DNA of 64,000 nt from the sequence record LR756502.1, one strand, 5' to 3'. Below, piece by piece: positions 4,430 through 51,826 of the stretch. Made by a program: the position numbers and the translations under genes. The first letter of the stretch is position 1. Each line of letters opens with the position of its first letter. The notes under the pieces were generated by a model, which saw nothing but the letters and a program-made list of their open reading frames with translations, ran no database searches and was not told where the DNA came from.

Positions 4430-5389
4430 ATGAAGATAAAGAATTACATACAATTTATAAAAGAATCCTCTGTTAATGACTATCATTCATTAGGTGAATG
4501 GGTAGTTTCTCTTATTGATGATGAATATGTAAGAGATATTGTTGCTAGATATACAAAAGATATTGAACATGATGTTGATTTATCAAATGCTATAAACGTT
4601 TTGGATGAAAGAACTAAACTTGATATAACTCAGCAAATAGAGAACTACATAAAAAATGGCATTGAAGATAAAGAACCAGATATTATAGTATCTTCTGTTA
4701 CCGAAGAACTGTTATCCGAAATAGCAACTGCTGGCAAAGGTATATTCTCTTCATTTATGAAGACACTTACTGCACTTGGTCTTAAAGAATCATCTCCAAA
4801 TTGGGAAAAGTGTCCAGAGGATTATTTAGTATTTTACTATTACTCGGATGTAGATGCTCAGGCTGTTAAGCAGGTCTTTGAGAGATTCAAATCACTTTTA
4901 AGATATTCTGGTATGATAGATAATGGTAAGAATGAGGTTAATCTATATTATGGTATTAAGTGTGATGGTACATTTGAATATGGGTTATCTTATGATGAAT
5001 TAAATAAAATTGGGCAATTTAGATTATCTCAATCAATAGTTAAGTGGATTGTTTCTATGGATCTATCTGCAGCATCATCATTAAAGAAGGAGTTGGTGAA
5101 TTTAACATATACTGACATAGTTACACTTGGTAAGATAAAGATTGATATGAGTACATTCAATCCAGGGTATAGTGAAAAGAGGTCTTTTCCGATAATTAAA
5201 GATAAGGTTATATCATTTGGTTATTATGGTATTGGTAAGTGGGATAATGGTAAATTAGATGAGGGAGAGTTTATGAATATTAAGAGTAAGTTCACAACTT
5301 GGTTATTATCAAAGAAATGGGGTAGTAAGGTGTTAATTAGTGTTAAGCCAAGTTCTTTTTGGTTATACATTCATATAAAATTAAAATAG
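4430..5389 (+). CDS. putative internal head protein
   Basis: N-terminus MKIKNYIQFIKE resembles the T4 capsid-targeting sequence MKTYQEFIAE. Confidence 0.55.
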   Translation: MKIKNYIQFIKESSVNDYHSLGEWVVSLIDDEYVRDIVARYTKDIEHDVDLSNAINVLDERTKLDITQQIENYIKNGIEDKEPDIIVSSVTEELLSEIATAGKGIFSSFMKTLTALGLKESSPNWEKCPEDYLVFYYYSDVDAQAVKQVFERFKSLLRYSGMIDNGKNEVNLYYGIKCDGTFEYGLSYDELNKIGQFRLSQSIVKWIVSMDLSAASSLKKELVNLTYTDIVTLGKIKIDMSTFNPGYSEKRSFPIIKDKVISFGYYGIGKWDNGKLDEGEFMNIKSKFTTWLLSKKWGSKVLISVKPSSFWLYIHIKLK

Positions 5390-5392
5390 TCT

Positions 5393-5725
5393 ATGAAATA
5401 TTTAAGAAGATATAATGAAGATGTGTCTGAGTTAGAATTTGACTTAGATTTTTCTATAGCGAAGATAAGAGAACATTTCCCGGAAGATACAGTAATTGAT
5501 ATGTTTGATAATGAAGTCTTGGAGTGGGTTGATTCTGATTGGGCTGACGAATCTGAATCTGAATATGATTGGTATATGGATCATAATAATGGTGAGGCTC
5601 AAGATGTTGTAATTGATACACTTTTAAACTGGTTTACATCCGAATTTAAAAAGAAACTTAATATGGATCAACATTGTGAACTATACGATGCTATTAAGGA
5701 AGAATATGACTTTTTACGTTTCTAA
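5393..5725 (+). CDS. acidic putative internal head protein
   Basis: N-terminus MKYLRRYNE; very acidic body. Confidence 0.5.
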   Translation: MKYLRRYNEDVSELEFDLDFSIAKIREHFPEDTVIDMFDNEVLEWVDSDWADESESEYDWYMDHNNGEAQDVVIDTLLNWFTSEFKKKLNMDQHCELYDAIKEEYDFLRF

Positions 5726-5772
5726 TCTAAAACAATTTCTTTATAATTTCTATAATTAAAAAGAAATTTCTA

Positions 5773-6270
5773 ATGACACAAAGTAAAAATCTCAAAGAAG
5801 AAGCTTTTGAAAAATGGAAGCCTATTATACAATCACTTGGTGTGACTGGTAGTAGAGCAGATTGGCTCTCAAAATATACAAATAGTCATCAATCCGGAAT
5901 ATTAGACTCAGAAAATGTAAATAGTTTATATACAGAAGAATCATTCCCATCACTTTTGCCAATCGCTAAACAAGTTGCTTCTAAAACCATTGGATTGGAT
6001 TTAGTTTCAGTATCACCAATCGGTGGTGGTAATTCAGGAGATGAGATTAGGAAAATAGATGCTGAATTAAAATCAGATAATCGTGATGGTAAAATTGACT
6101 CGATAATTGAGGGAACGGAATATGTTGAGAAAACAAGAGAAGATCATCCAGATTATATAAAACCAAAAGGACCAAGTGGTGCGCTATTTTATCTTGACTA
6201 CCAATATGGTAGTACATCTTCCCCTATTACTACTAGCATTGATGAAGATAAATTAAAAAGAATAATATGA
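5773..6270 (+). CDS. truncated gp23-like major capsid N-terminal fragment with an inserted RxxKI segment
   Basis: EKWKPII and PSLLPIAKQVASKTIGLDLVSVSPI...GPSGALFYLDYQYG align by eye to T4 gp23 NKWKPLL and VRRAIPNLIAFDICGVQPMNSPTGQVFALRAVYG; only 165 aa. Confidence 0.7.
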   Translation: MTQSKNLKEEAFEKWKPIIQSLGVTGSRADWLSKYTNSHQSGILDSENVNSLYTEESFPSLLPIAKQVASKTIGLDLVSVSPIGGGNSGDEIRKIDAELKSDNRDGKIDSIIEGTEYVEKTREDHPDYIKPKGPSGALFYLDYQYGSTSSPITTSIDEDKLKRII

Positions 6271-6464
6271 GATTTGTAAGTCCAGGTGTTTATACCAAAG
6301 AAGTAGATATTTCTGGGTATAGTATTTCAAAGAACCAAATTAGGAGAGGTAAAATATGTCGACTATTGGGTATAAAAAACACCAACCCAATTGTTGGTAT
6401 GTCTTATGGATGTACAAGTGGATTTATCTTATCCAATACTTACGAAGAATTTAAAAATACCTAA
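6267..6464 (+). CDS. mini-protein with a tail-sheath (gp18-like) N-terminal motif plus RxxKI motif
   Basis: MRFVSPGVYTKEVDIS matches the SPGVYxxExD start of contractile tail sheath proteins; followed by RRGKICRLL; 65 aa. Confidence 0.65.
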   Translation: MRFVSPGVYTKEVDISGYSISKNQIRRGKICRLLGIKNTNPIVGMSYGCTSGFILSNTYEEFKNT

Positions 6465-6478
6465 GGAACATAATGAAG

Positions 6479-6487
6479 TAATATATA
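6479..6487 (+). promoter_or_regulatory. TAATATATA element
   Basis: Exact motif 5 nt before the ATG at 6493. Confidence 0.55.
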
Positions 6488-6492
6488 ACTTC

Positions 6493-6846
6493 ATGATATT
6501 TAATGTTTATTTGGTGTGTGCTGAAATTGGTGACGAGAAATTGTATAAAATAGGATATACTAGAAGGGAGATAGAGGTTAGAATTAAGGAATTCAAAACC
6601 GGAAATGCTTCTGATTTCTTTATAGTTGATTCCTTTCAATCAAAATGGGGAACTAAAATAGAAGCAAGACTACATAAGGCTTTTAATCATAAAAGAATAA
6701 ATGGTGAATGGTTTTGTTTGAATGATGGTGATATATTTGAATTTAAGAGACTTTGTGAAATGATTCATAATAATTTTGAAATGATGTTGGAAGATAATAC
6801 TTATATAATGGATAGAGTGGAAAAAGGAAAACAAAGAATATTTTAA
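6493..6846 (+). CDS. GIY-YIG family (T5orf172/MUG113-like) nuclease
   Basis: YKIGYT..IEVR, EARLH..F..KRINGEWF motifs; start moved from 6391 to the ATG after the TAATATATA element. Confidence 0.8.
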   Translation: MIFNVYLVCAEIGDEKLYKIGYTRREIEVRIKEFKTGNASDFFIVDSFQSKWGTKIEARLHKAFNHKRINGEWFCLNDGDIFEFKRLCEMIHNNFEMMLEDNTYIMDRVEKGKQRIF

Positions 6847-6848
6847 TT

Positions 6849-7310
6849 ATGAGTGACTTGGAAATAAAAAACTTTATTTATAAAATAAAGGACTACAATA
6901 TACGCAATCATTGTTTTGATATATATATTTCTTATCAATGGAAATATGGAAGACCAGAAACTTATAAAGAGATATATAAAAGAGTAAATAGAATATCAAA
7001 AATAAAAAACATAATGTCAAAAGAAATAATACATGATGGGTCTCAACCATTAGATTGGAGTAAAATTGGACCTCAAGATAGGATAAAATTTATAATTCCA
7101 GTTGGTGGACTGTCTAAAAATAAATGGTGGCAGTTTTGGAAAAAGGATGATCTTAAGAAATCAGAAGATCAAATCTGTAAATTAATTTATGAGTATAAAG
7201 AAGAAGTTGATTGGGATAATAATACTGGTGAACTAACAATCAATAGAAAATTACCATATAATAAAGAATATTGGTTTCCTGATAATAATAGTCATAAACT
7301 ATACGAATAA
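6849..7310 (+). CDS. protein carrying a gp20-like portal fragment plus RxxKI motif
   Basis: GPQDRIKFIIPVGGLSK..K...YKEEVDWDNNTGE...KEYWFP aligns by eye to the T4-like portal segment APERRIFYIDVGNLPK.K...YRNKLVYDA.TGE...EDFWLP; 153 aa. Confidence 0.65.
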   Translation: MSDLEIKNFIYKIKDYNIRNHCFDIYISYQWKYGRPETYKEIYKRVNRISKIKNIMSKEIIHDGSQPLDWSKIGPQDRIKFIIPVGGLSKNKWWQFWKKDDLKKSEDQICKLIYEYKEEVDWDNNTGELTINRKLPYNKEYWFPDNNSHKLYE

Positions 7311-7326
7311 AAATAAATATAACAAT

Positions 7327-7596
7327 ATGAGCTCAATGAAAGAAATGGCTATTAAAGATTATATAGCTAATGTAGATTTTAGAGGTGATTGGTCAATATC
7401 TAAAATTAAAGAAGAGATGAGAAAATTCTTAGGAGAAGAACCAGGAATTGACATAATCTATAAAAAGGATGTTATGGTAAATGAGGTTTCTGGTGAGGCT
7501 AAAGAGTTTGTTGGTGTTAGTAAAGTACAAATTATTTTTACTGATACTGATGATAAGTTTAGAAAGATAGAGTTTCTTGTAGGAGATAAAATTTAA
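7327..7596 (+). CDS. hypothetical protein
   Basis: 89 aa ORF in tight operon spacing. Confidence 0.6.
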   Translation: MSSMKEMAIKDYIANVDFRGDWSISKIKEEMRKFLGEEPGIDIIYKKDVMVNEVSGEAKEFVGVSKVQIIFTDTDDKFRKIEFLVGDKI

Positions 7597-7616
7597 TTGC
7601 TAAAAATATAACACAA

Positions 7617-7979
7617 ATGGAAGTTAAATCATCAGTATTAGATTACTTGGGTAAATTTGAAGGTGGTATTATGGTACTTATTGCATTAACTTGTGATGAT
7701 GAGTATTATGAAGGTGTTTTCTTTTATACTTCTGAGAGTATTGTGTTTAGTGCTGATGAGAGACTTGAACAAAAACTTGGTTGTAAAATTGAGGATTGGA
7801 TTGGATATTCTGACCTATTAAAGGGTATTCTGAAAAATATTGTCCCATATAGTCAAATGATTAATAAGATAGATGATGTTGATTTCTCTGAGTATTTGGA
7901 AAATAAACAATCTACATCTGAAGAGGCTGAGGATATCGATTCATCTCAAATCACACAAGCTACACAGTCGTCTATTTAA
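7617..7979 (+). CDS. hypothetical protein
   Basis: 120 aa acidic ORF. Confidence 0.6.
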   Translation: MEVKSSVLDYLGKFEGGIMVLIALTCDDEYYEGVFFYTSESIVFSADERLEQKLGCKIEDWIGYSDLLKGILKNIVPYSQMINKIDDVDFSEYLENKQSTSEEAEDIDSSQITQATQSSI

Positions 7980-8373
7980 GTAGATCACTATCAGTCATCT
8001 TACCTTGTTTATCAAAAAATAAGTAGACTTTATCACTAAATCCTGATTTTCTTCTTATTCCCATTCCGTATGATTTTAGAGTTTCTTCAAAATCTAATAT
8101 TTCTTTCTTATCTTTTAATTCATTTTCATAATAGCTTTCTTCATCCAATATATCATCAATATCTTCTATCATCATAATAATACATTTAGATGCTGGATGT
8201 GATGATAAACTACTACCATAGTGGTCATTATCTTTCCAAGAACCATTCCAGATATCAATCTTTAATCCCATATCGGATAGATCTATAGATAAATCTTTTA
8301 ATAATTCAATTTTGGATTGAATCTTACTACCATAAACTTTAGCTTCGTTGAATTCTGACCACTTTTTAATCAT
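7972..8373 (-). CDS. putative internal head protein
   Basis: N-terminus MIKKWSEFNE. Confidence 0.55.
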   Translation of the reverse strand: MIKKWSEFNEAKVYGSKIQSKIELLKDLSIDLSDMGLKIDIWNGSWKDNDHYGSSLSSHPASKCIIMMIEDIDDILDEESYYENELKDKKEILDFEETLKSYGMGIRRKSGFSDKVYLFFDKQGKMTDSDLLK

Positions 8374-9133
8374 AACATAACTTATCCTTTTTGATGTATC
8401 TGTTTGTATGTGAACATAGAGGTTGTAAATTGCTGTGGTGATTGAGATTTATAACATCATCTTCTATAATAGCGGATGATATTGGTATGATGTGATCAAT
8501 GTCCCATCCATAGTTTAGTTCTCCATTATGCTTTCCGTAGTTTTCCCAAGTCATCCAAGGTTCAAATTTTGACTCTAAATATATTCTAAATTCGTTATAT
8601 GAACATCCAAGTATTGTTTGTGTTTTGGTTTTCTTTTTTAGACCTTTTGATTTTATACAATACCTTATATATGTTCTGATATTTTGTGATATTCTATATA
8701 CGGGGTCATTTATCCTTCTCTCCCTCTGCTTTTCGTTTATAACCTCATTATTGTCTTTATTTCTTCTTTTTCTTATGATATTTAGGTTTTCTCTGTTTTC
8801 TATAGCGTATTTTTTATTCCTCATATCCAATTCCTCCTTATTCTCAAGATAATAGTTATGCATGTATCTATATAATTTATCTTTATTATCGATAGCGTAT
8901 CTTCTTTTATATTCCGATACCTTATCTATATTTTCATTATAGTACTCTTTAGATTTATTTAGTAACTCTTCTTTATTTTCTGTATAGTATTTCCTACTAT
9001 ATTCTTTGGATTTATCTTTGTGTGATTTTCTATACTCCTTCTGATATTCGGATATACATGAGTTACATCTATTTGAATTTTCTTTAAATTCAGTGTTCTC
9101 TTTTTTATTTTTACAATTTAAACATTCCTTCAT
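8366..9133 (-). CDS. HNH endonuclease (free-standing, homing-type) with YYxxNKE helical repeats
   Basis: N-terminal CxxC...CxxC; repeats YYTENKE/YYNENID/YYLENKE; WDIDHIIP...NLQPLC..TN HNH core. Confidence 0.8.
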   Translation of the reverse strand: MKECLNCKNKKENTEFKENSNRCNSCISEYQKEYRKSHKDKSKEYSRKYYTENKEELLNKSKEYYNENIDKVSEYKRRYAIDNKDKLYRYMHNYYLENKEELDMRNKKYAIENRENLNIIRKRRNKDNNEVINEKQRERRINDPVYRISQNIRTYIRYCIKSKGLKKKTKTQTILGCSYNEFRIYLESKFEPWMTWENYGKHNGELNYGWDIDHIIPISSAIIEDDVINLNHHSNLQPLCSHTNRYIKKDKLCYD

Positions 9134-9151: not shown

Positions 9152-10894
9152 ATGATAATATGTGAAATAGGAATTCGAGGATATAAGTCGTTTGGTAACA
9201 ATGAGCAGGTCTTAAATCTCAAGACTGATAAAGGTGAATTATTACTCTTGGTTGGTAATAATGGGAATGGTAAGTCATCTCTCTTGGAGTCATTTGAGTA
9301 TTGTTTATATGGTAAAGTTAAATCAGGTAAAGCTAAAAAATGGAATAAACTATCATCATTACCAAATAGGATAAATGGTGAATTGCAGAATAGAATTAAG
9401 TTTATTTCAAATGGTGTAGAGATTGAGGTAAAAAGGGGTATATCTCCTAGTATTCTTGAGTTATGGGAGAATGGCATTTTAAATGAGAGAGCTGGTAAAG
9501 CTAATCTTGATGAGAAGATAGAGAAGTATATAGGATTGGATGTTGAGACATTTAAATCATTTATATCTTTAAGTGTGAATGACTTTAAAAACTTTATATC
9601 TCTATCAAATGAAGAAAAACAATTACTTCTTGATAAGTTATTTAACCTTGAGGTTATTAACATATTAAACAATATTCTAAAGGATATCAATAAGAATAAT
9701 AAAATAAGAATGGCTTCCTTGGATTCAGAAATTAGAACACTAGATGAGTCTGTTGATTCTATTAAGAGGTCTATTCAGAAGGCTATTGAAAGAGAGAAGG
9801 AAGAAGCTAAAATTCTACTTGAAAGAGAGAAGGTTGATATTCAACTTGAAATTGATAAACTTACCGAAGAGATGAACTCTAAGAAAGATGATTATAAATC
9901 ATTGAAGGAGAAAATTGATAAGATAAAGGAGAAGGAGAATGAATTAAATGAAGAAATTGATAAGGAGAAGAAACAGTATATAAATACTCAAAACGATATC
10001 AAAAACGTTCAGAAAGAGATTGACTTATATGATTCTGGTAAATGCCCAACTTGTAAAACAGATTTTACTGAATCAGAACACTTTTCAAATTTAAGAAGCG
10101 CTTTGGTTGAGAAAAAAGTCGGGTTTGAATCTATCAAAGTAGAGATAGAAGAAAACATTAGACTAGTTAAAGAAAAACAAGTTAAGTTGAAATCAATATC
10201 TGATAAAACTACAACTTCTTTTAATGATCTAAACTTTCTTCTTAGAAACTATAAGTCTCAAATAGATAAACTAGTTCAAAAGAAATCAGATGAGTCTACT
10301 CCTCTTGTCACAAAACCATCTATTAATATTCAAGAGTTTCAAAATACAATTGATGAACTTACTCAAAAGAGATCTATTGGTTTTGATAACTCTACTATCT
10401 GTAAAGAGAAGGAAATGTTTTATAAGGAGTTGAATAAGATATTTGGTGAAGATGGTGTTAAGAAATCGATAATATCTGGTATTATTAAGCCAATTAATCA
10501 TTTTATTGCCGAGAATACTAAGAAGATGGGTCTACCATTTGATGTTAGATTGGATGAGACATTTACTGCTGAGATAAGACAACTCGGTTCAATAATAGAA
10601 CATGATTCACTATCAACAGGTGAGACTAAGAAGGTAAATATTGCTATATTAATAGCTTATTTAAAGTTAATACGAACTAAGAAGCATATAAATATTCTAT
10701 TTTTGGATGAGGTATTCTCTTCAATAGATATTGAGGGCATTGATTCAATATTGGCTTTGTTGAAGTCATTTGCTAATGATTATAATATAAATATACTTGT
10801 AGTTCATCATGCTATTCTAAATCAGGAAATGTTCGATAGGATATTGAAGATAAACAAAGAGATATTCTCTTCAATAGAAGAGATAGTATATTAA
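9152..10894 (+). CDS. sbcC: gp46/SbcC/Rad50-like recombination ATPase
   Basis: Walker A GNNGNGKSS, coiled coils, CPTC zinc hook, LSTGE signature, LFLDE Walker B, H-loop. Confidence 0.92.
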   Translation: MIICEIGIRGYKSFGNNEQVLNLKTDKGELLLLVGNNGNGKSSLLESFEYCLYGKVKSGKAKKWNKLSSLPNRINGELQNRIKFISNGVEIEVKRGISPSILELWENGILNERAGKANLDEKIEKYIGLDVETFKSFISLSVNDFKNFISLSNEEKQLLLDKLFNLEVINILNNILKDINKNNKIRMASLDSEIRTLDESVDSIKRSIQKAIEREKEEAKILLEREKVDIQLEIDKLTEEMNSKKDDYKSLKEKIDKIKEKENELNEEIDKEKKQYINTQNDIKNVQKEIDLYDSGKCPTCKTDFTESEHFSNLRSALVEKKVGFESIKVEIEENIRLVKEKQVKLKSISDKTTTSFNDLNFLLRNYKSQIDKLVQKKSDESTPLVTKPSINIQEFQNTIDELTQKRSIGFDNSTICKEKEMFYKELNKIFGEDGVKKSIISGIIKPINHFIAENTKKMGLPFDVRLDETFTAEIRQLGSIIEHDSLSTGETKKVNIAILIAYLKLIRTKKHINILFLDEVFSSIDIEGIDSILALLKSFANDYNINILVVHHAILNQEMFDRILKINKEIFSSIEEIVY

Positions 10895-11134: not shown

Positions 11135-12663
11135 CAGTTATCACAGCTTATCATACCATTACCATTACACTCTTCACAGGTAGTTCTTCCATTTCCATCA
11201 CAATTGTCACATTCAACCTCACCATCACCACCACATTTTGAGCATTTTATTATACCCTCAACACAATAGGGGTTATTACATGATATAGATATTCCATCAT
11301 CTTCAATTTTTCCTGTTCCTTTACACACTGCACATGCCTCCTCACCATCACCACTGCATTTATCACACTCTATTACTTCATTTCCATCACAAACAGAGCA
11401 TATAACATCTCCTCTTCCATCACATTCACCGCACTCATATTCACCATCACCACCACATCTTTCACACTCACCTCCAGAGTACCCGCCATCAGTATCTTCT
11501 AAGGTAAGAGAACCACTACTTCTGCAATTTCCAATCTCACCTTTTTCTGGATTATAGTATTTTAGTGTATCTAAATATGGGTAATTATCATATCTTCTTG
11601 GTTTTAGTTTAACATCTAATTCTATCCTTCTTACACTTCCATCTGGTGCAAATGTATCATTTCCTGTTCCACTTGAGTTTTGATATTTGCAATAGAATCC
11701 ATTCTTTTTAGCATATTGTCTAAATAGTTCAACATCGGAATCTTCGTGTGTGTAGATTCTATCCATGAACATCTTGTCATCATTAAGCTTCCAAACTAAA
11801 GCTCTTCCCCTTATTTTATTTGGACTATCCGGTGATTTGTATATAACTAGGCTAATCTTATCTGGATTTGAACAATAGATGTCAAAGAAATCATCACTTA
11901 CATTAGCCATACAAGATGATCCAAGAGTACCTCTATCAGTACCTTTTTCATATCTTTCATAATCATACCACTCAGCTATACTATATCCATTAACTATTTC
12001 GAAGTTTGAGAATATATCATTTATAGAATCAATTGTTGCTTTGTATTTATTTACAAAATCTTCAATTTCTTTATCCGATATTTCTACCTTTGCTGTGTTT
12101 AATAATGTTCTAACTCCTCTTCCAACTCTTATAATTTGTCTACTTATTTTAAAGAAATCTGAAGGATCTTCTCCACTTCCTAATCTAAGAGCTTCTATGT
12201 TTACTGGGATTGGCTTATATTCTGTATCGTCTGGTATAAATACGACAAATTTCTTTTGACTAACTGGTGATATTACTTCCTTACCAAGGGTACCCATTGT
12301 GCCTATTGGTGGTTCTGTCTCAATTTGCTTTCTCTCTAATTCCAGAGGCTCCCATAGATAATTAAATCTAGAATCAGAGTCTAAGAATTTACCAGTTATT
12401 GAATATCTCCATTTATTTTTGTTATTATCTAATATTTCTTTAACTTTTCTATCTGGAGTGAATGATATTGTATCATTTGCATCACTTATGTCGAAATAGT
12501 TTGATTGAACTGGATAATCTTTATTCTCTATATCTAATAGAGAATCCGATACTGGTCCTCCAATCTTTTTAAGAACCTTTCTAAGCTTTTCAGAGTATTT
12601 AACATCTGATTCAAGAATAAGTTCAAAATTTTCATTTATAAATTCAAAGTACTTCTTCACCAT
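11131..12663 (-). CDS. putative internal head protein with a C-terminal array of CxxCxGxG zinc-finger repeats
   Basis: N-terminus MVKKYFEFINE; central SSCM...GRALVW...MDRIY block; about 10 CxxC units, most followed by xGxG. Confidence 0.7.
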   Translation of the reverse strand: MVKKYFEFINENFELILESDVKYSEKLRKVLKKIGGPVSDSLLDIENKDYPVQSNYFDISDANDTISFTPDRKVKEILDNNKNKWRYSITGKFLDSDSRFNYLWEPLELERKQIETEPPIGTMGTLGKEVISPVSQKKFVVFIPDDTEYKPIPVNIEALRLGSGEDPSDFFKISRQIIRVGRGVRTLLNTAKVEISDKEIEDFVNKYKATIDSINDIFSNFEIVNGYSIAEWYDYERYEKGTDRGTLGSSCMANVSDDFFDIYCSNPDKISLVIYKSPDSPNKIRGRALVWKLNDDKMFMDRIYTHEDSDVELFRQYAKKNGFYCKYQNSSGTGNDTFAPDGSVRRIELDVKLKPRRYDNYPYLDTLKYYNPEKGEIGNCRSSGSLTLEDTDGGYSGGECERCGGDGEYECGECDGRGDVICSVCDGNEVIECDKCSGDGEEACAVCKGTGKIEDDGISISCNNPYCVEGIIKCSKCGGDGEVECDNCDGNGRTTCEECNGNGMISCDNC

Positions 12664-19373: not shown

Positions 19374-22300
19374 TTATCTTGGGCCGGATGATGGTGGTAA
19401 TATTACAGCTGCTGCCGCATCTATCAATGTAGGTGCATCTGTAGCATCTTCTGTGAATATATTCCAAACGTGACAAGATGATGTACCTGACCAAGACATA
19501 CCTCTAAATAAAATTTGTCTTATATAATCATCTGTTACTTGACCATCTCCAGTCAATGTAAATGATGATCCATACCAGTTACCATTTCTCCAAGTACCAT
19601 TTTCCCAGAACACATTAAATGCGTTCATGTAGTTTGCGACACCATTCTTCCATATCATACCAATTCCTGTTCCAAGTAGGAATTTACCATCATTCCACTT
19701 TGAAATATAAAAATCACTACTATCTAAATTTCCATTTTCCCAATAACAGTTATCATCAAAATTAAATGTTGATTGAGTTGACCCATTTCTCTTCACATAT
19801 GGATTGAAGGAGCTAGCTTTAAATGTTCCAGATGTGAACCTACCATCCAACCAAACAGAGTTTAACATTTCACCAGATGGATGACTAAATGTTCCAGTTG
19901 TCCAAAGTATGTTTTTAAGATTGGCCTTTTTAGTTATCTTTTTCTCTGTAAACGCTCTTTGTAACTCTGTAAATATCTTTTTGTCTTTAACAAATTTATC
20001 TTTAACATCTGTAACTGTTCCGTTTCTCCATAATCCATAGTATGAACTACTGAATGAATCTACGAAATTTGATGGATTTGAACATGTTGTTCCTAAAAGT
20101 GATATTGTTGAGTATGTTCCACTTCCTTCAAACTCACCTGATGTTAGAACACCATTGTTCCAAACTCTTCCTTTGAATTTTCCTCCATTGAACTCTCCTG
20201 TATACCAAGTTGAGTTTGTTAACCCGCTTCCGTTTCCAAATTCACCACCATTAAATATACCATCTGCCCAAGAGTAATCTGTTGAGTATGTTGATGTGCT
20301 CATAGTATATCCATATCCTGATATGAATTTTCCACCATTGAATGTTCCATTTAACCACTTGGCGTTATTTGATTCAAAAGATCCTCCATTGAAGTATCCT
20401 CCATTCCAAATCGATTCAGAGAATTCATCACTACCATCTTCTGTATAGATATTCGCTCCAAATCTACCCGCCTTGAATATTCCATTATTCCAAGTTACTA
20501 ATCTTGGTGGTTTTGATCCAGAGAATATCCAGTCTGTATTTGTTGCAAAAATATTAGCATTTTCTACAATACCATCATTGAATATACCACCATAGAAATT
20601 GGTATCTGTTGATGATATACCAACATCACCTAATACCCCATTACTAAATGTTCCATTAAACCAATCTGATAAGTACATCTTACCGCTCTTAAATGTTCCA
20701 TTTTCCCACCCACTCTTATAAAAACTACCTCCATTAAATGTACCATTTATCCAAGAATATCTATTATTATAGAAGTGACCAACTATATTACCAGATCTCC
20801 AAGATGATTGGAACTTCTCTGATTGATAAGTTATTGCTCCTGTTGATCCACCGCCAGCATTTGACTTATAAAATAATCCATTTTGGAAATTACCATCTTC
20901 CCATCTAGACTCTCTAAATACACCATTTGAGAATGTTTGTCCAAGCCAAGAGGAGTTATAATAAATACCATCTCTCCATGTGTCATTGCCACTTGTTAGA
21001 AAGCTATATACGAATAGACCAGAGTTTATATTATTACCAGTCTTTCTTAATATCATTTCAGTGAACATTAGGTCCTTTATTGCTGGTAAGTCTGTGAAGT
21101 CAATATCCCTATTATCATAAGATTGATTATAAACTACTGAATCTTTCATATATGCTCTTCTGAACATACCAGATTTTATATTTGACTTATTTACTTTTAC
21201 ATTATGTATGTAATTATATCTATTTCTAACTTCAACTCCATCTATTGCTGTTGTGAAATATGATGATGCTGTTAGTGTTGATATAACAGATGATGTTACT
21301 GATATTTCCTCCAAAATAAGTGATCTTGGTGGTAAAATGTCAATAACCTTATATGTGTCAGGTAAAGTTGTTGTATTTGATAGAATATCAACTTGGTCAA
21401 TAGAGTTTAAATACACTATAGATCCAACCTTTATCATATCGTCATCTATTGATACTGGAGATGGCATTGATATTGTCAACTTATTATCACCAATACTTGT
21501 TATTGATATATCATAATCACCTCCATATGTGGATAGATTTGGTATAACATTGTCGTAGTTATGACTTATATTACTTCCACTGTTCCAATCGGATGTCTCG
21601 AATAAACCACTTCTGAAATCAGAGTCTATTATATAAGCATCCGTTGTATCAACAGTTCCATTAGCAACTCCTAAATTATCTATGTGATCTGATGTTGTTA
21701 TAATATCTATTGATGGTAGTTGGTTAGTATTAATTACTACCGATGTGTCACCTGACATTATGTATTCATTCTCTTTTGATGTACTTAGTACTACTGTGTA
21801 CTCAAAAGAGTGTTTACCTGATAAACGATCATCATGATAAACTGCGTCATTTAGTATGAACTTTCTATCAAGAAAGTTTAAAACACTATTGTCGCTAACT
21901 AAAGCTCCTTTTATATAAAACTGATCCTTGTGTCTAAGTCTATTGTAACTATCCTCTGATATATAAAACTTATATGCTATATAGTTTATTGATGTATCTG
22001 ATGAGTCTGGTGTAATAGTCCATTCATCATATGCTAATACCTTCATAATACGGTCACTATTAAACTTTGATCCATAGAATAAAGACTCTATATAGTGTGA
22101 GTTAACAGATTTCGTTCTTATAACTCTAGAATTATTTAACCTAGAATTCTTTATTTCTGATGTTTTAATATCAGCACTTTCGAATGAACAGTTGTTAAAC
22201 TCACCACCTAGAATATTAATATTTAGTGATTGTGTTAGTGATAGTATATATGATTCAACTGTTGAAAATGCTGCTGATTGAGTTCCTAATAAACTATGAA

Positions 22301-23348
22301 AGAAATTTCCATTTAATATAAGTGACTTATCTATTTCTGAGTCAATAACATAGTTATATCCAAATCCTTTATTATTTGATTGATTTATTTTCTGGAATGG
22401 TAGTCCATATTCATCAATATCAGCGAAATAGCTTTCATTTGAATTTGAAACCGAATTCATACTACCAGTAGCCCATATTGTATTAAGTAGAGTACCTGTA
22501 TTCCAATTAGAATCAACGCCCTCCCACTTAATTTTCTTATCTTGTCTACCAAAAAGGCCTGCATTCCAGTCTCCTTTGAAGTTACCATCTCTGAAATTTG
22601 CCTTTGATATAATTGGTCTGAAATATGTTACATCAACAACCCAGTTACCATCTTCAAACTTATATACATATCCTTCTTTGAACTCCATTCCACCATAGGT
22701 AAATGTAGCGTTCATTATTTTAATTCTTTCGTTTGAAAGAGATGAAGAGTATGTACCTAAGAATGATGTGAAGTTTGTTGAGAAATCACTTGTTACATTT
22801 GTCCAACTATATGTACCTCCTTTTATAAAGAATCCTGGTGACCCTGTTAGTCCTGTATTTTCTCCAAATCCAACTGTTCCTGCATAATCGTTATCTGTGT
22901 AGATAACATTATCCTGGTATTGGTCAAATCTAAAACCAAATGAACCTCCTTCTGAGGTTAGCATTCTATTTACATATTTGAATTCAGTATCATCTCTTAC
23001 TGGATAAACTCTGACAAAACTATCTATACTATCATCATTCCAAATAGAATCACCTGTATAATCTATATCTAGTGTTATTTTACACTTATCTACTTCAAGT
23101 ACTTTATATCCATCTCTGCCTTTCTTATACTTATCATCTTTTATAAGAAGGTCACTATCATAATTTCCATTTAGTATGAAAACTCTATCACCTACTCTTA
23201 TATTAGAATTAACCTCTGTATAGATTCCAGTTTTTAAATATCCTTTAATATCAATTGGCTCTACCCAATTGACAAGTCTGGTACTGAATGGTTTATTAGA
23301 CAGATTTTTTTTAATTTCTAAAGGATTTACTGAAATTAACTTCGCCAT
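19374..23348 (-). CDS. large putative virion protein with WxxGxFxxG pentapeptide repeats (beta-helix)
   Basis: 1324 aa; dozens of [WF]xxGx units in the C-terminal 40%. Confidence 0.65.
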   Translation of the reverse strand: MAKLISVNPLEIKKNLSNKPFSTRLVNWVEPIDIKGYLKTGIYTEVNSNIRVGDRVFILNGNYDSDLLIKDDKYKKGRDGYKVLEVDKCKITLDIDYTGDSIWNDDSIDSFVRVYPVRDDTEFKYVNRMLTSEGGSFGFRFDQYQDNVIYTDNDYAGTVGFGENTGLTGSPGFFIKGGTYSWTNVTSDFSTNFTSFLGTYSSSLSNERIKIMNATFTYGGMEFKEGYVYKFEDGNWVVDVTYFRPIISKANFRDGNFKGDWNAGLFGRQDKKIKWEGVDSNWNTGTLLNTIWATGSMNSVSNSNESYFADIDEYGLPFQKINQSNNKGFGYNYVIDSEIDKSLILNGNFFHSLLGTQSAAFSTVESYILSLTQSLNINILGGEFNNCSFESADIKTSEIKNSRLNNSRVIRTKSVNSHYIESLFYGSKFNSDRIMKVLAYDEWTITPDSSDTSINYIAYKFYISEDSYNRLRHKDQFYIKGALVSDNSVLNFLDRKFILNDAVYHDDRLSGKHSFEYTVVLSTSKENEYIMSGDTSVVINTNQLPSIDIITTSDHIDNLGVANGTVDTTDAYIIDSDFRSGLFETSDWNSGSNISHNYDNVIPNLSTYGGDYDISITSIGDNKLTISMPSPVSIDDDMIKVGSIVYLNSIDQVDILSNTTTLPDTYKVIDILPPRSLILEEISVTSSVISTLTASSYFTTAIDGVEVRNRYNYIHNVKVNKSNIKSGMFRRAYMKDSVVYNQSYDNRDIDFTDLPAIKDLMFTEMILRKTGNNINSGLFVYSFLTSGNDTWRDGIYYNSSWLGQTFSNGVFRESRWEDGNFQNGLFYKSNAGGGSTGAITYQSEKFQSSWRSGNIVGHFYNNRYSWINGTFNGGSFYKSGWENGTFKSGKMYLSDWFNGTFSNGVLGDVGISSTDTNFYGGIFNDGIVENANIFATNTDWIFSGSKPPRLVTWNNGIFKAGRFGANIYTEDGSDEFSESIWNGGYFNGGSFESNNAKWLNGTFNGGKFISGYGYTMSTSTYSTDYSWADGIFNGGEFGNGSGLTNSTWYTGEFNGGKFKGRVWNNGVLTSGEFEGSGTYSTISLLGTTCSNPSNFVDSFSSSYYGLWRNGTVTDVKDKFVKDKKIFTELQRAFTEKKITKKANLKNILWTTGTFSHPSGEMLNSVWLDGRFTSGTFKASSFNPYVKRNGSTQSTFNFDDNCYWENGNLDSSDFYISKWNDGKFLLGTGIGMIWKNGVANYMNAFNVFWENGTWRNGNWYGSSFTLTGDGQVTDDYIRQILFRGMSWSGTSSCHVWNIFTEDATDAPTLIDAAAAVILPPSSGPR

Positions 23349-23842: not shown

Positions 23843-24592
23843 ATGAATAAAAAGAAGATATTAATATTTAGTGGTGCTGGTGTATCCGCTGAAAGTGGAA
23901 TAAAAACCTTTAGAGATTCACTAAATGGCCTTTGGTATAATTTTGATGTAAAGGAAGTGGCTTCAATTGAAGGATGGAGGAAAGATAAATCAAAAGTACT
24001 TGACTTTTACAACAAAAGAAGGTCTGAGATGAAGTCTGTTGATCCAAATAAGGCACATACTACTATTGCTGACTTGGAAAAATATTTCGATGTTACTATT
24101 GTAACACAAAATGTTGATAACCTTCATGAGAGAGCTGGGTCTAGTAATATTATACATTTACATGGCGAATTATCTAAGGCTAGAGGATCACTATATGAGA
24201 ATAAAACATCACCACTTGATACAGTAGTTGATATTGGATATAATGATATTAAAATTGGTGATAAGTGTTCGGTAACTGATTCCCAATTACGACCACATAT
24301 AGTTTGGTTTGGTGAGGTACTAGATAGTACTAATTTAGATAATGCTAAAAAGGCAGCTGTCGATGCTGATGTTTGTATTGTTGTTGGTACTTCAATGCAG
24401 GTTTCTCCAGCAAATACTATACCATTTTTGACAAAAGAAAGTTCTATAATCTACTATGTTGATCCAAGTGAGATTAACTTCTATGTTCCTGAGTTCAGAT
24501 CCCAAAATTTTCACCACTTAAACGAACCTGCCTCAACTGGTATGGTTAAAGTGTATAATGAATTGTTAGAAACATTTATTAATAAAAAATAA
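23843..24592 (+). CDS. cobB: Sir2/CobB NAD-dependent deacylase
   Basis: GAGVSAESGIKTFRD, TQNVDNLHERAG, HGEL, RPHIVWFGE, VGTS motifs. Confidence 0.93.
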   Translation: MNKKKILIFSGAGVSAESGIKTFRDSLNGLWYNFDVKEVASIEGWRKDKSKVLDFYNKRRSEMKSVDPNKAHTTIADLEKYFDVTIVTQNVDNLHERAGSSNIIHLHGELSKARGSLYENKTSPLDTVVDIGYNDIKIGDKCSVTDSQLRPHIVWFGEVLDSTNLDNAKKAAVDADVCIVVGTSMQVSPANTIPFLTKESSIIYYVDPSEINFYVPEFRSQNFHHLNEPASTGMVKVYNELLETFINKK

Positions 24593-25032: not shown

Positions 25033-25185
25033 ATGAAAGATGTATTTATGAAAGATGTTTATAAGAATCTTGGCCTTGATAGTGTTGGTAGTGACAAAAG
25101 CTACCTTGAAGTTTGGATGAAAATTATTTATGATGGTAGAATAAAAACCAGAAGGATTAACAAAATCAAAAAGATATTAGGTTAA
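25033..25185 (+). CDS. 50-aa protein with a C-terminal RxxKI motif (not in the ORF track)
   Basis: Hand translation MKDVFMKDVYKNLG...KTRRINKIKKILG*. Confidence 0.55.
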   Translation: MKDVFMKDVYKNLGLDSVGSDKSYLEVWMKIIYDGRIKTRRINKIKKILG

Positions 25186-28076: not shown

Positions 28077-29189
28077 TTATTTATTTTTGAATTCTTTTTT
28101 ATCATTTGATATGTAGAACTTATCGAAGTCATAGTATTTATCATAAACTTCTCTAATCTTCTTAAGAGTAACCTTATCTAGAATCTCGTTGACTGTCCAT
28201 CCTTCTGGATTGATCCATTGATTAACATTCTTATATCTTAATATTTCATCTTTTTGCATTCTAACCTTGTAATATTCCTTAACAAGATCAAATCTCTCTT
28301 TTGTTAAATACTTATCTGGATTTGATATTACATCTTTAACACATGCAATAACCTCATCCGCATTCTTATTTGATGTTTGTGTTGATATTGTGTTAAGTCC
28401 TTGACCATTCATTCTTGATTGATAACAACTTACATAGTATACAAGACCTCTTTTTTCTCTAATTTCTTGGTATAATGGTGACATCAATCCTAATGATAAC
28501 ATAGCATTTATGTAGTGTACATATGCGAAGTCCTCTTCAATTACAGGTGATAGAATCGCAATTGAACTTTTATCTTTGAAATCATTATTAAGTTCTAAAT
28601 CTACCTTGTGATTGCCGAATTCAATTTTATTTTCAAATTTCCTAACGGCGAAATCAAGATCATCATTTTTATATTTCTTGTTCTTTGATACATTTATTAT
28701 TTTTGAAGGCTTAGCATATTGTAGCTCAAAGTAGTTAAGACAATCCATATACTTTAGGTTTTCTAGATCACTTCTAAGTCCAATAGGATCATAGTCTTTA
28801 AATAGCTTTCTTGATAGATTTAACATATGTGATTGTGTTTGGTCATTAAAGCAATCCATGTATTCTTCTAATACAATTTTTCTCTCATTCTCGAATTGTT
28901 CTTTAGTCACATTAAATTGACCAAGTAAATCCATAAACTCACCTTTCCATTTGTTTACTTTTTCATCAAGTCCTTGTATATAGAATACAATTTCATTTGA
29001 CGATGTGTACGCATTCCAATCAATACCATCCTTATCAAAGGCTTCTTGTAGATGATCGAAGTTTTTACACATTAAATGTTCCATTAAATGTGATATTCCA
29101 TAAATTCCTGGTTTCTCTAGATTTGTAGATCCCTCATAGATAACGTAGAATCCAGATAAATCAGTTTGTGACTTTAAATTAGTAATCAT
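28077..29189 (-). CDS. M16 family zinc peptidase
   Basis: Inverted zincin GISHLMEHL, NAYTS, ERKIVLEE; C-domain LYQEIREKRGLVY. Confidence 0.9.
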   Translation of the reverse strand: MITNLKSQTDLSGFYVIYEGSTNLEKPGIYGISHLMEHLMCKNFDHLQEAFDKDGIDWNAYTSSNEIVFYIQGLDEKVNKWKGEFMDLLGQFNVTKEQFENERKIVLEEYMDCFNDQTQSHMLNLSRKLFKDYDPIGLRSDLENLKYMDCLNYFELQYAKPSKIINVSKNKKYKNDDLDFAVRKFENKIEFGNHKVDLELNNDFKDKSSIAILSPVIEEDFAYVHYINAMLSLGLMSPLYQEIREKRGLVYYVSCYQSRMNGQGLNTISTQTSNKNADEVIACVKDVISNPDKYLTKERFDLVKEYYKVRMQKDEILRYKNVNQWINPEGWTVNEILDKVTLKKIREVYDKYYDFDKFYISNDKKEFKNK

Positions 29190-30647: not shown

Positions 30648-31307
30648 ATGATTAAAGTAGGACTAACTGGTAATAGATTTTCAGGAAAGGATAGAGTTAC
30701 TAAGCTTTTTGGGCAAATTAGTATACCTGTCTTTCATGCTGATATAATTTTAAAATTTATTATCCAATATAACCTTGAGTTTGGTAGAAGAATTAAGTCC
30801 AAAATGGACCCGTCTATATATGATGCCAAAGGTCAGTTAGATCCATCTAAGATAGATAGTGATAAATTCAATCAGATAATTAATATTGTCCAACCAGAGT
30901 TATTCCGAGTATATCAAAAATTCCAATTAAATCAAAAGAACAAAAGCATTTATACAATATTCCATTCTTCTATTTTATTTGAAAGAGATTGGTATAAGGA
31001 TATGGATTTTAATATTAGTGTATTCTCTCCTAGACAGGATAGAATAAAAAGAGCGAAGGATAATACGGATCTTCCAACTGAAATTATATATGACCTTGTT
31101 TCAAAAGAAATGGATGAATTAGATAAAAACAAGTTATCCACATATATAATTCATAACTATGATGACGCTATTGATATTACTAAACAGGTTGATAATATTG
31201 ATCAACAGATAATAGATAGATATCTTAGAAGTGAGCATACCAAAAAGACGGATTCTGTATCAAGTGCTGTTAATAAGAAAATTCAAACAAAAATATATCC
31301 TTTATGA
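30648..31307 (+). CDS. coaE: dephospho-CoA kinase-like protein
   Basis: KVGLTGNRFSGKD P-loop, PVFHAD, ILFE, YIIHN. Confidence 0.8.
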   Translation: MIKVGLTGNRFSGKDRVTKLFGQISIPVFHADIILKFIIQYNLEFGRRIKSKMDPSIYDAKGQLDPSKIDSDKFNQIINIVQPELFRVYQKFQLNQKNKSIYTIFHSSILFERDWYKDMDFNISVFSPRQDRIKRAKDNTDLPTEIIYDLVSKEMDELDKNKLSTYIIHNYDDAIDITKQVDNIDQQIIDRYLRSEHTKKTDSVSSAVNKKIQTKIYPL

Positions 31308-31624
31308 TAAATTTATTTATTCTATTTCTATTAGGTTCACTATTCGGAATTTTTGCTTATATTTACATTCCGAAATTACTGGGTAGGTTTTTTCTTACTA
31401 TTAAGAAAGATTTTATTATTAATTTTACAATAACACACTTCTTCCACCCAACAGAATTGGCTAAAAGGGGTGAGTATGTAAGAGTTAAATCTATGTCAAT
31501 TAAAGTTAGTGCCAATAATGAGAATGATGCTATTGATATAGCAAATGATGTGGTTCATGATAATCTAAAGTTAGAGATTAACTCAATTGAAGAAATAACA
31601 AAAGAGATAAATGGAACAGAATAG
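31304..31624 (+). CDS. hypothetical membrane-anchored protein
   Basis: N-terminal hydrophobic helix. Confidence 0.55.
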   Translation: MINLFILFLLGSLFGIFAYIYIPKLLGRFFLTIKKDFIINFTITHFFHPTELAKRGEYVRVKSMSIKVSANNENDAIDIANDVVHDNLKLEINSIEEITKEINGTE

Positions 31625-50151: not shown

Positions 50152-50333
50152 TGGAAGAAGATAAATTTAAAATATGGTATGACGACCAGCCTAATGATGT
50201 TGTAAATAAAATATCATCCTGTCTAAAGAAATTTGGATTAACTATCGATGAACTCGATGGTGGTGATGGTTTTAATGAATATAAAATAGTAGATGTTTAT
50301 ATCACAAAAATTGATAAAGATGACAACACTTAA
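50151..50333 (+). CDS. hypothetical protein
   Basis: 60 aa, coupled to ligA. Confidence 0.5.
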   Translation: MEEDKFKIWYDDQPNDVVNKISSCLKKFGLTIDELDGGDGFNEYKIVDVYITKIDKDDNT

Positions 50334-50928
50334 AGAGATTAGAAAACATATGCTCGATTATATGAGTTATGTGCCAACAGATGATGAAATCTATGATGAA
50401 GATGGCCATTGTGGTGGTGAATTGTGGAATAATGTAAAGGGATTTTGGGAATACTTTAACACAGATGATGATTTCAGGTTTGTTGTATCATGTCAATGGG
50501 TTAGTGACTTAGACTTAGATGGTGGAAGAGATTATATCTTATCTAGCTCAAAAGTTACTCCACTGTTATTTGACTATATGTATAACACACTTGGTTGGAG
50601 AAGTAAAGACTATGAGAAAGTAATTTTCAATTCTACAAATTTGACCGAGGAATTGGAGGATATGTTTGATAATATACCGGTTATTAGAGATACTAAGATA
50701 GAAGAAATTCTAAAGAAAGAAGTTGATAATGTTGAGTCGTGTTTTGAAAATGAAGATGATTATTGGTCAAATATGATTATTAAATTTCCAATGAATAGGA
50801 AATCCGCATGTGATGGACAAGATAACTTAACTTTCGTTGGATATTCTAAATTGGATGGTAATCCTATATATAAAATGAATTTACCAAATGGATTTGAAGT
50901 TATTAAATCAGTTAATAGTTATTTATAA
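50320..50928 (+). CDS. hypothetical protein with an internal RxxKI motif
   Basis: RDTKIEEIL; ATG at 50320. Confidence 0.6.
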   Translation: MTTLKEIRKHMLDYMSYVPTDDEIYDEDGHCGGELWNNVKGFWEYFNTDDDFRFVVSCQWVSDLDLDGGRDYILSSSKVTPLLFDYMYNTLGWRSKDYEKVIFNSTNLTEELEDMFDNIPVIRDTKIEEILKKEVDNVESCFENEDDYWSNMIIKFPMNRKSACDGQDNLTFVGYSKLDGNPIYKMNLPNGFEVIKSVNSYL

Positions 50929-51433: not shown

Positions 51434-51826
51434 ATGTTTATACTTGGGTTAATTATTGGATTTGTTGCTGGTATTGTATCAGTGATTTTCGCACATAAAT
51501 GGGTAAAAATTAAAAGTAAGAACGATAGTATTGTCTACTCTAGAAGAGGTTTATACTATCAGGATTATAATATATCACAAGGTGGTGTACCAGGTGGTAC
51601 CCTCTCGGTTACTTTTGAGGTTGGTGAGATTGATTATAGTGATACAAAGTCTAAGATCGAAGTAATATCAATTAAGACGAATAGGTCTGAATATAATAAG
51701 AGCTCTGATGATTTAGAAAGGGTTACTAAAATGGCTGATCAGTCTTGGGTAGATTCCAAAGAAATTGAATGGATACAATCAGCTAGTAAGAGTAGAAATG
51801 ATAAAATTGATAAAATATTAGCATAA
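51434..51826 (+). CDS. membrane-anchored protein with a C-terminal RxxKI motif
   Basis: N-terminal TM helix; ends RNDKIDKILA. Confidence 0.65.
   Translation: MFILGLIIGFVAGIVSVIFAHKWVKIKSKNDSIVYSRRGLYYQDYNISQGGVPGGTLSVTFEVGEIDYSDTKSKIEVISIKTNRSEYNKSSDDLERVTKMADQSWVDSKEIEWIQSASKSRNDKIDKILA

Follow-up and report, generated by a model that had tools for sequence, protein, structure and literature searches.

Related systems

MicroProteins of plants and animals, such as LITTLE ZIPPER and Id, are small single-domain proteins derived from larger interaction partners. They keep only the interaction element of the larger protein and are thought to act by occupying its partners. They are eukaryotic transcription regulators with shown dominant-negative action. 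The locus described here also encodes short proteins that keep only an interaction element of a larger protein, as shown by sequence for the capsid and portal and weakly for the sheath. Their parents are virion proteins of a phage, each copy has an added conserved insertion, and their action is inferred only.

A peptide of T4 portal gp20 residues 288-311 binds terminase gp17 and inhibits DNA packaging in vitro (PMC4493910). It covers the same region of the portal, the clip domain, as the segment retained in the portal-like gene of this locus. It is a laboratory peptide. Here, a natural gene family encodes the clip segment, mostly with a 12-residue Trp-rich insertion at the tip that contacts terminase in T4.

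The Gol region of T4 gp23 binds EF-Tu and triggers the Lit protease (PMC3014915). It involves the first quarter of a T4-type capsid protein acting as a ligand on its own, and it is part of the full-length capsid gene. The capsid-like gene of this locus is a separate gene. Its retained block is the most conserved part of the N-terminal region and is split by an insertion.

Satellite proteins such as P4 Sid, SaPI CpmB and Ppi, and PLE TcaP are small proteins that bind capsid or terminase proteins and redirect or block helper-phage assembly. They are encoded by satellites, are not fragments of the proteins they bind, and have known phenotypes. T4 gp24 is a vertex paralogue of gp23, a duplicate of a capsid gene kept in the same genome. 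It keeps the whole HK97 fold and is built into the shell, while the capsid-like gene here keeps only the first ~130 residues' worth. Free-standing GIY-YIG/T5orf172 homing endonuclease genes of T4-like phages lie between conserved genes and are usually sporadic. A gene of this type lies within this locus in a local high-identity tract that may reflect gene conversion, but it is present in every syntenic locus and is under strong constraint.

Overview of the locus

The window analyzed is a 64,000-nucleotide stretch of LR756502.1, a 642-kb uncultured freshwater "huge phage." Sequences and loci that were compared are given L numbers. All features of the locus at 4430-7979 described below are on the plus strand. 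The first-pass annotation reported three short, intact, tightly packed ORFs, each with a piece of a different T4-like virion protein and an RxxKI peptide. This observation was confirmed, although the sheath likeness is only partly supported. The ORFs are found at 5773-6270 (165 aa), 6267-6464 (65 aa), and 6849-7310 (153 aa). The annotation missed a T5orf172 nuclease-like gene between the second and third. Searches of Pfam, PHROGs, and NCBIfam found no family for the three ORFs or their neighbors except T5orf172. Literature searches for decoys, truncated portals, or packaging-inhibiting mimics found no description of such a system.

Upstream genes and promoter-like box

The first gene of the syntenic module is at 4430-5389. 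It encodes a conserved 319-aa protein of unknown function. It is present upstream of the capsid-like gene in 16 syntenic loci (HMM E values of 1e-163 to 1e-189). The next gene, at 5393-5725, encodes a conserved acidic protein of ~110 aa of unknown function. It is syntenic in the same loci, and its median dN/dS is 0.39.

A promoter-like box (TTATAATTTCTATAAT) lies at 5741-5756, 17 to 32 nt upstream of the start of ORF 5773. A TATAAT-type box lies at a similar distance upstream of the orthologue in L001, L011, L013, and L014, with a looser AT-rich variant in L012. It differs from the ATATATA box found upstream of the major capsid protein (MCP), portal, protease/scaffold, and sheath genes and of window genes 518 and 3292. 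Its function is inferred. A sigma-70 and terminator scan was no better than shuffles. The operon lacks the late-gene upstream box but lies directly downstream of two large genes that carry it. We tested whether the 908-aa upstream gene is the sheath. It had no similarity to a candidate in phage PTm1 and no PDB or PHROG hit. The real sheath lies at L007:37222-41073.

Capsid-like gene

ORF 5773 (5773-6270) matches the N-terminal part of the phage's own 571-aa MCP (LR756502.1, locus L004:22453-24168). BLASTP gave an E value of 1e-14 over MCP residues 8-129. The family HMM gave an E value of 2e-25, and hhalign gave a probability of 99.6% (E value of 9e-25). The comparator is a true T4-type MCP, as its homologue in L003 hits PF07068 at 8e-34. 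Only MCP residues 4-131 are represented. ORF 5773 itself had no Pfam hit at E values up to 1, and the HK97-fold body of about 400 residues is absent.

Residues 4-83 match the MCP propeptide and N-arm. Residues 84-130 (nt 6022-6162) are a family-specific insertion of ~47 residues that contains R104-x-x-K107-I108. Residues 131-152 match the next MCP block. The insertion contains most of the invariant columns (K100, N103, R104, K107, I108, E119, H125, and P126). The family contains at least 172 clusters of ~148 aa, and the median dN/dS is 0.39. The top PDB profile hit was T4 gp23 residues 2-62, but only with an E value of 0.22. AF2 predicts helices only, with a low pLDDT of 61 and a pLDDT of 85 on the insertion helix. 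The absence of a predicted globular fold is as expected for a partner-dependent segment.

The first-pass annotation equated the retained block with the Gol region. Sequence searches of the PDB with the phage's own or related MCPs, made to map the block onto T4 gp23 numbering, returned no usable hit, and this claim was not supported.

Sheath-like gene

The start of ORF 6267 (6267-6464) overlaps the stop of ORF 5773. It had no profile hit to sheath domains (PF04984/PF17482), and BLASTP against the phage's own 1,283-aa sheath was not significant. The family HMM hit sheath residues 7-24 with an E value of 8e-4 among 678 ORFs. The family aligned weakly by hhalign to the first ~48 sheath residues (79%, E value of 1.6e-5 over 45 columns). 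A basic RxxKI segment (about residues 24-33) reads as an insertion relative to the real sheath. The family was found in 14 loci. P6, G7, R26, K29, and I30 are invariant, and the median dN/dS is 0.52. Its motif looks more generic than the N terminus of the phage's own sheath.

T5orf172 gene

The gene at 6493-6846 encodes a T5orf172/MUG113 (GIY-YIG-like) nuclease-domain protein of 117 aa from the ATG at 6493. The open frame begins at 6391. It matched PF13455 with an E value of 1.7e-18 (67.4 bits; cutoff, 22.3) and PF10544 with an E value of 3.6e-11 (43.9 bits; cutoff, 20). It is present at this position in all 17 syntenic loci, with a median dN/dS of 0.24, so the sporadic presence of a selfish homing gene was not seen.

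The protein is identical in the relative L009. It lies at the center of a DNA tract with 95 to 100% identity between the window and L009, against 72 to 90% in the flanks, and dS falls from 0.6-0.8 to 0.02-0.09. This is one pair only, and ordinary recombination could give the same pattern. Homing-type genes flank MCP and portal in relatives. These observations could fit recombination debris, in which pieces of structural genes were dragged here by the nuclease and persist without a function of their own. The evidence below makes this unlikely.

Portal-like gene

Residues 80-148 (nt 7086-7292) of ORF 6849 (6849-7310) match the phage's own portal residues 277-335 at 42% identity (E value of 5e-16). 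These residues align to about gp20 residues 284-341, within the T4 clip domain (residues 279-358; PMC4493910), the terminase and neck docking site. Only portal residues 258-335 are represented, and the ORF is not a full portal with wing, stem, clip, and crown domains. The window ORF alone does not hit PF07230 (Portal_T4), but 22 of 35 family members do.

Residues 1-56 form a variable helical extension that contains RISKI. This extension is lineage specific and varies fast. Residues 91-102 (nt 7119-7154, NKWWQFWKKDDL) are an insertion at the position of the clip tip. AF2 predicts three N-terminal helices followed by four short strands and two helices, with a pLDDT of 74. A fold search of this model against the PDB placed the T4 portal only at ranks 3 and 15 with E values above 1, which is not significant. 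The family contains 106 representatives, mostly of 45 to 224 aa and starting with Met, and it is very diverse.

Downstream genes

The gene at 7327-7596 encodes a conserved 89-aa protein of unknown function. It is syntenic in 18 loci and is the most constrained gene of the module, with a median dN/dS of 0.19. The gene at 7617-7979 encodes a conserved protein of ~120 aa of unknown function at the end of the small-gene run. Orthologues are found in L001, L009, L011, L012, and L014.

RxxKI motif

The RxxKI peptide is present in all three ORFs and is invariant in the capsid-like and sheath-like families. In these two it lies within the insertion, and in ORF 6849 it lies in the N-terminal extension. 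It belongs to a short motif enriched about 19-fold in the small proteins of this phage. The extended pattern occurs 14 times, against 0.75 expected. Many other small proteins of this phage carry the motif at their C terminus, and it also ends membrane proteins. We considered whether it is a repeated DNA element. This was rejected because the codons and flanks differ between copies, and the enrichment is at the protein level and not the DNA level. A fourth gene of the same build, an MCP C-terminal piece plus the motif, lies elsewhere in the genome (L006:22362-22547).

Conservation and selection

Operon order is kept in 17 diverged loci of huge phages, around the T5orf172 gene. The three mini-genes are intact in the window, belong to gene families with invariant residues, and have dN/dS values of 0.35 to 0.52. 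The insertions are the best-conserved parts. Identity to the parent genes is only 29 to 42%, so the copies are old. The capsid-like gene also occurs where no T5orf172 is nearby (L013, L022, and L025), and portal-like genes also occur in unrelated contexts (L039). T5orf172 itself is vertically conserved in every syntenic locus. Frameshifted or neutrally evolving homologs had been named beforehand as the sign of debris. Simple debris was rejected by family size, synteny, and dN/dS, and debris is already largely refuted for ORF 5773.

The three genes differ in evolutionary depth. The capsid-like gene is clade-wide, while the portal-like gene is patchy at this locus. The portal-like and sheath-like genes are missing or rearranged in some close relatives, and in one relative (L010:479-960) the portal-like gene is split by one frameshift. 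This argues against an essential assembly role. Fusions and permuted forms exist (the 84-aa ORF of L001, and L033). These forms and the split gene would fit debris.

In distant phages, the conserved insertion motif is combined with other MCP pieces and with scaffold-like repeats (L029 and L032). Scaffold-like small ORFs are found in the same operon in L009 and L014. The 65-residue T4 propeptide is assembly specific (PMC7136217), and its equivalent is retained here. The MCP propeptide may target the capsid-like protein, and its fusions, into the assembling head as prohead core or internal proteins. The other mini-genes would be minor virion or assembly-chaperone components. The position of the operon downstream of two genes with the late-gene box is consistent with this. 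However, the sheath piece has no place in a head, the motif also ends membrane proteins, and the operon lacks the late-gene box. We consider this reading unlikely.

Possible functions

The interpretation in the first-pass annotation, that these are immune decoys or baits or else regulators of virion assembly, was partly supported. The ORFs are fragments by homology of capsid and portal, and weakly of sheath, and they are not recombination debris. Regulation of virion assembly, its second option, is at least as likely as decoys.

We tentatively suggest that the cluster is a conserved operon of small interface-mimic proteins. Each gene would encode one detached contact-making element of a virion protein of this same phage, namely, the cleaved propeptide plus N-arm of the MCP, the N-terminal arm of the sheath, and the clip domain of the portal. 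Homology (only weak for the sheath), intactness, family size, synteny, and purifying selection were established by the analysis. The mode of action, including any binding, is only inferred from what the parent segments do in T4 and other phages. In this view, the proteins would act as competitive ligands in the manner of microProteins and would occupy the partner sites of the full-length proteins. The clip would occupy the large terminase or neck. The sheath arm would occupy the handshake sheet, as the sheath N terminus forms the intersubunit handshake strand (PMC10457771). The capsid N terminus would occupy scaffold, portal, or EF-Tu, as the first quarter of gp23 binds EF-Tu (PMC3014915) and its N-arm touches the portal (PMC7136217). 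The RxxKI helix would dock the proteins onto a shared, unidentified partner. The T5orf172 gene is a stable member of the module and in this view probably drives local gene conversion. The portal-like insertion lies exactly where the T4 clip touches terminase, so native-like terminase binding may be lost rather than kept. The short, weak sheath likeness, the nonsignificant fold search for the portal-like model, the missing, rearranged, or split genes in some relatives, and the lack of the late-gene box also count against this reading. Of the possible purposes, control of the phage's own head and tail assembly and packaging ranks slightly first.

Immune decoys rank second and are doubtful. The mini-proteins would present the most conserved epitopes of capsid, portal, and sheath to host sensors. 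They would either block the sensors without activating them or tether them through RxxKI to a phage factor. The copied blocks are the most conserved parts of the parent proteins. Lit and CapRel sense MCP through short motifs, and Avs families sense portal and MCP (PMC13581612). The Gol region is reported as the most conserved part of gp23 (PMC3014915). The sheath-like and portal-like genes have a patchy, accessory-like distribution, the box upstream of the operon is of a non-late type, and in L013 and L040 a mini-gene lies next to a DNA methyltransferase. However, no sensor, host, or defense system is linked to these genes, and no evidence for immune decoys was obtained. Avs sensors are reported to wrap whole folds (PMC13581612), which short fragments would not reproduce. 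No sensor of tail sheath is known, and the capsid propeptide is an assembly-specific element.

Interference with co-infecting T4-like phages ranks third and is unlikely. The detached pieces would act as poison subunits that block a rival's terminase docking, sheath polymerization, or prohead assembly, while the phage's own diverged proteins tolerate them. The inhibition of T4 packaging by a clip peptide, the satellite proteins described above, the more generic sheath-like motif, and the diversity of the families are consistent with this. However, the capsid-like N-arm block is nearly the same as in the phage's own MCP, so self-poisoning would be expected.

Implications

A further unlikely possibility is a phage-encoded mimic cassette of motif-tagged mini-proteins, each displaying one conserved docking element of a core virion protein. 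Through a shared RxxKI docking helix, they would tie whatever binds those elements, either host pattern-recognition sensors or a rival phage's assembly proteins, to a common phage hub and neutralize it. This would be the first multitarget structural-protein decoy system in viruses of bacteria. The stand-alone portal-clip family alone, with about 100 clusters at 50% identity, would be a new class of packaging or sensor modulators.

Independently of function, three uncharacterized protein families and one short motif are defined here. The families contain hundreds of members in huge phages, and all can now be annotated. Hypothetical small ORFs in huge phages may be recognizable as pieces of known structures. 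If these proteins act as inferred, phages would have a general way of making regulators or decoys by detaching the contact elements of their own virion proteins. This gives directly testable ligands for terminase-portal docking, sheath polymerization, and the poorly understood role of the capsid propeptide and its EF-Tu contact. It also bears on how bacterial sensors that recognize core virion proteins could be evaded.

Genome and location of the structural genes

The window covers positions 310001-374000 of LR756502.1, an unannotated uncultured phage of 642,428 bp. It contains no N. The phage is one of the huge phages from a French freshwater lake and is sister to LR745206 (PMC9723777). We located its own structural genes elsewhere in the same genome, on the segments here called L004 and L007. 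The portal gene is at L004:17546-19261, the protease/scaffold gene is at L004:20273-22372, and the major capsid protein (MCP) gene is at L004:22453-24168. The sheath gene is at L007:37222-41073 on the minus strand. Homologues in LR756500.1 (segment L003) matched PF07230 at 2.3e-70 and PF07068 at 8e-34. T4 gp20 structures were matched at 2e-25, and the sheath matched PF04984 at 7e-8.

The window also encodes an SbcC/Rad50-like ATPase (9152-10894), an M16 peptidase (28077-29189), and an SPFH/Band-7 protein (33802-35697). A Cys-rich ORF of 255 aa (8366-9133, minus strand) lies between the run of small genes and the SbcC-like gene. By eye, its C-terminal part looks like an HNH-type nuclease. A similar ORF lies near the portal of LR745206.1 (L002:9818-10507).

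Capsid-like, sheath-like, and portal-like ORFs

The first-pass annotation had reported three short ORFs starting at 5773, 6267, and 6849, each carrying a piece of a different virion protein. All three were found at those positions and are intact, so its observation held, although the sheath likeness is only suggestive. None was recognized by the profile libraries searched (Pfam, PHROGs, and NCBIfam). The direct profile hit to gp23, gp18, or gp20 that had been set as a test was therefore not obtained for the window ORFs taken alone. Comparison with the phage's own structural genes succeeded.

ORF 5773 is capsid-like. It aligns to MCP residues 8-129 (E 1e-14), and the profile comparison gives 99.6%. 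The alignment leaves ORF residues 84-130 unmatched. The insertion claimed in the first-pass annotation is real.

ORF 6849 is portal-like. Its residues 80-148 align to portal residues 277-335 at 42% identity (E 5e-16). It contains a 12-residue insertion after S89-K90.

ORF 6267 is sheath-like. It shows no BLASTP similarity to the sheath. The profile of its 14-member family finds sheath residues 7-24. Profile-profile alignment with hhalign extends this to about 48 residues, with the basic RxxKI segment as an insertion (79%). This is suggestive but not proven.

We compared 575 small ORFs with 73 large ORFs in the 264 kb examined. Six pairs passed the threshold. Besides the capsid and portal pairs, the one other structural-gene pair was L006:22362-22547, a 61-aa ORF in LR756502.1 outside the window. 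It joins a copy of MCP residues 513-546 (46% identity, E 1e-7) to a C-terminal RxxKI tail. It is a fourth gene of the same build, at another locus.

Gene families, synteny, and selection

ORF 5773 has at least 172 relatives of about 148 aa at 46-57% identity, on contigs up to 640 kb. Its invariant columns lie mostly in the insertion. An exhaustive profile search with ORF 6849 found 106 cluster representatives. About 95% of these are 45-224 aa, and only about five are full-length portals. The short ones begin with Met and end just after the clip block. Most share the Trp-rich insertion, and a minority lack it. Of 35 family members, 22 hit PF07230 on their own.

One gene order recurs in 17 diverged loci. 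It runs, in this order, through the 319-aa gene, the ~100-aa gene, the capsid-like gene, the sheath-like gene, T5orf172, the portal-like gene where present, and the 89-aa gene. The sheath-like gene is found in 12 of these loci. The portal-like gene is found in four (the window and relatives L009, L010, and L014). A fused, permuted variant is found in relative L001.

Median pairwise dN/dS was 0.39 for the capsid-like gene, 0.52 for the sheath-like gene, and 0.35 for the portal-like gene. It was 0.24 for T5orf172 and 0.19 for the 89-aa gene. In one relative, the portal-like gene (L010:479-960) is split by a single frameshift. These are gene families, and the reading as recombination debris is largely excluded.

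In two unrelated contexts (L013:6438-7166 and L040:326-1225), a capsid-like or portal-like mini-gene is followed directly by an N6/N4 DNA methyltransferase gene. Small ORFs at L009:2681-3016, L014:7920-8246, and L032:8187-8486 (the last in a more distant phage) carry repeats that, judged by eye only, resemble the repeat region of the L003 protease/scaffold protein. In L009 and L014, they lie in the same operon, between the 89-aa and 120-aa genes. The window lacks this stretch of ~560 bp.

Retained elements of the parent proteins

Residues 277-335 of the phage's own portal align to about residues 284-341 of T4 gp20, in the clip. The clip is exposed outside the capsid, docks the packaging ATPase gp17, and later docks the neck. 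In T4, the tip residues 291-296 contact gp17, and a peptide of residues 288-311 binds gp17 and inhibits packaging (PMC4493910). The insertion of the portal-like mini-protein sits at that tip.

The sheath N terminus is the strand of the intersubunit "handshake" (PMC10457771). The N-terminal 65 residues of the capsid protein are the cleaved propeptide, and the following N-arm touches the portal (PMC7136217). The first quarter of gp23, which contains Gol, binds EF-Tu and is the most conserved part of gp23 (PMC3014915).

Each mini-gene (the sheath-like one only on its suggestive similarity) thus keeps a contact element and drops the body of the protein. AF2 predicts helices but no globular fold for the capsid-like protein. 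For the portal-like protein, it predicts a confident three-helix N-terminal extension followed by a strand-and-helix unit.

RxxKI motif

The pattern R..KI..[IL][LFM] occurs 14 times in ORFs of the 264 kb. Within-ORF shuffles give 0.75 ± 0.9, with a maximum of 4 in 200. The motif is enriched about 19-fold over shuffles. It lies mostly at the extreme C terminus of unrelated small proteins of this phage, two of them with predicted membrane segments. Beyond the cluster, it was found in the window at 25033-25185, 51434-51826, and 50293-50928. It was also found in L004 at 6319-6783 (minus strand), 12466-12633, and 43017-43373, in L006 at 22243-22365 and 22362-22547, in L007 at 45640-45912, and in segment L008 at 24078-24347 and 31172-31534. 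Codons and flanks differ between copies, so the motif is selected at the protein level.

In more distant phages, the related motif of the capsid-like insertion is combined with other MCP pieces, with scaffold-like repeats, and, in L032, with a neighboring portal-like ORF. In L033 (4986-5252), an 88-aa ORF fuses the N terminus resembling the capsid propeptide directly to the sheath-like module. In the close relative L025, the two are separate, overlapping ORFs.

Nuclease-like genes

The T5orf172 gene at 6493-6846 was missed in the first-pass annotation. Its protein is identical in the window and in L009, the closest relative. DNA identity between the two is 95-100% from about 5967 to 6863, against 72-90% in the flanks, and dS falls accordingly. 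This fits local gene conversion of the homing type. The gene is nevertheless present and constrained in every syntenic locus, so it is a stable member of the module rather than a recent invader. The first ~35 codons of ORF 6849 (window 6864-6963) are only 77% identical to L009, inside a tract that is otherwise 96-100% identical. This is a local mosaic or fast-evolving patch.

In LR756500.1, two large paralogous ORFs with similar C-terminal halves (L003:4373-5986 and L003:12613-14412) bracket the portal-to-MCP block. In phage PTm1, the gene in the position after the MCP is annotated as a Hef-like homing endonuclease. This suggests that mobile nuclease genes often flank head genes in this group.

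Upstream boxes

The capsid, portal, protease/scaffold, and sheath genes share an ATATATA box about 25-35 nt before the start codon. It lies upstream of L004 positions 17546, 20273, and 22453 and of L007 positions 41073 and 44082 (both minus strand). The two large genes just upstream of the cluster (window 518 and 3292) also have it. The MCP, protease/scaffold, and sheath genes share a second box further upstream. This is probably the late-promoter signature of this phage group. ORF 5773 and five orthologues instead have a TATAAT-type box. This hints at separate regulation, but read-through from upstream is possible.

Interpretation

The first-pass annotation proposed that the three ORFs encode decoys for host sensors or regulators of virion assembly, and this was only partly supported. 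The analysis itself shows intact genes with homology to the phage's own capsid and portal proteins, conserved as families in a recurring gene order under purifying selection. That the proteins act as competitive ligands is inferred from T4 biochemistry. They may serve self-regulation, immune decoy, action against rival phages, or a role inside the head, and the evidence does not separate these. We found no description of such genes in the literature. The best-supported statement is structural. These are detached docking elements with conserved add-ons.
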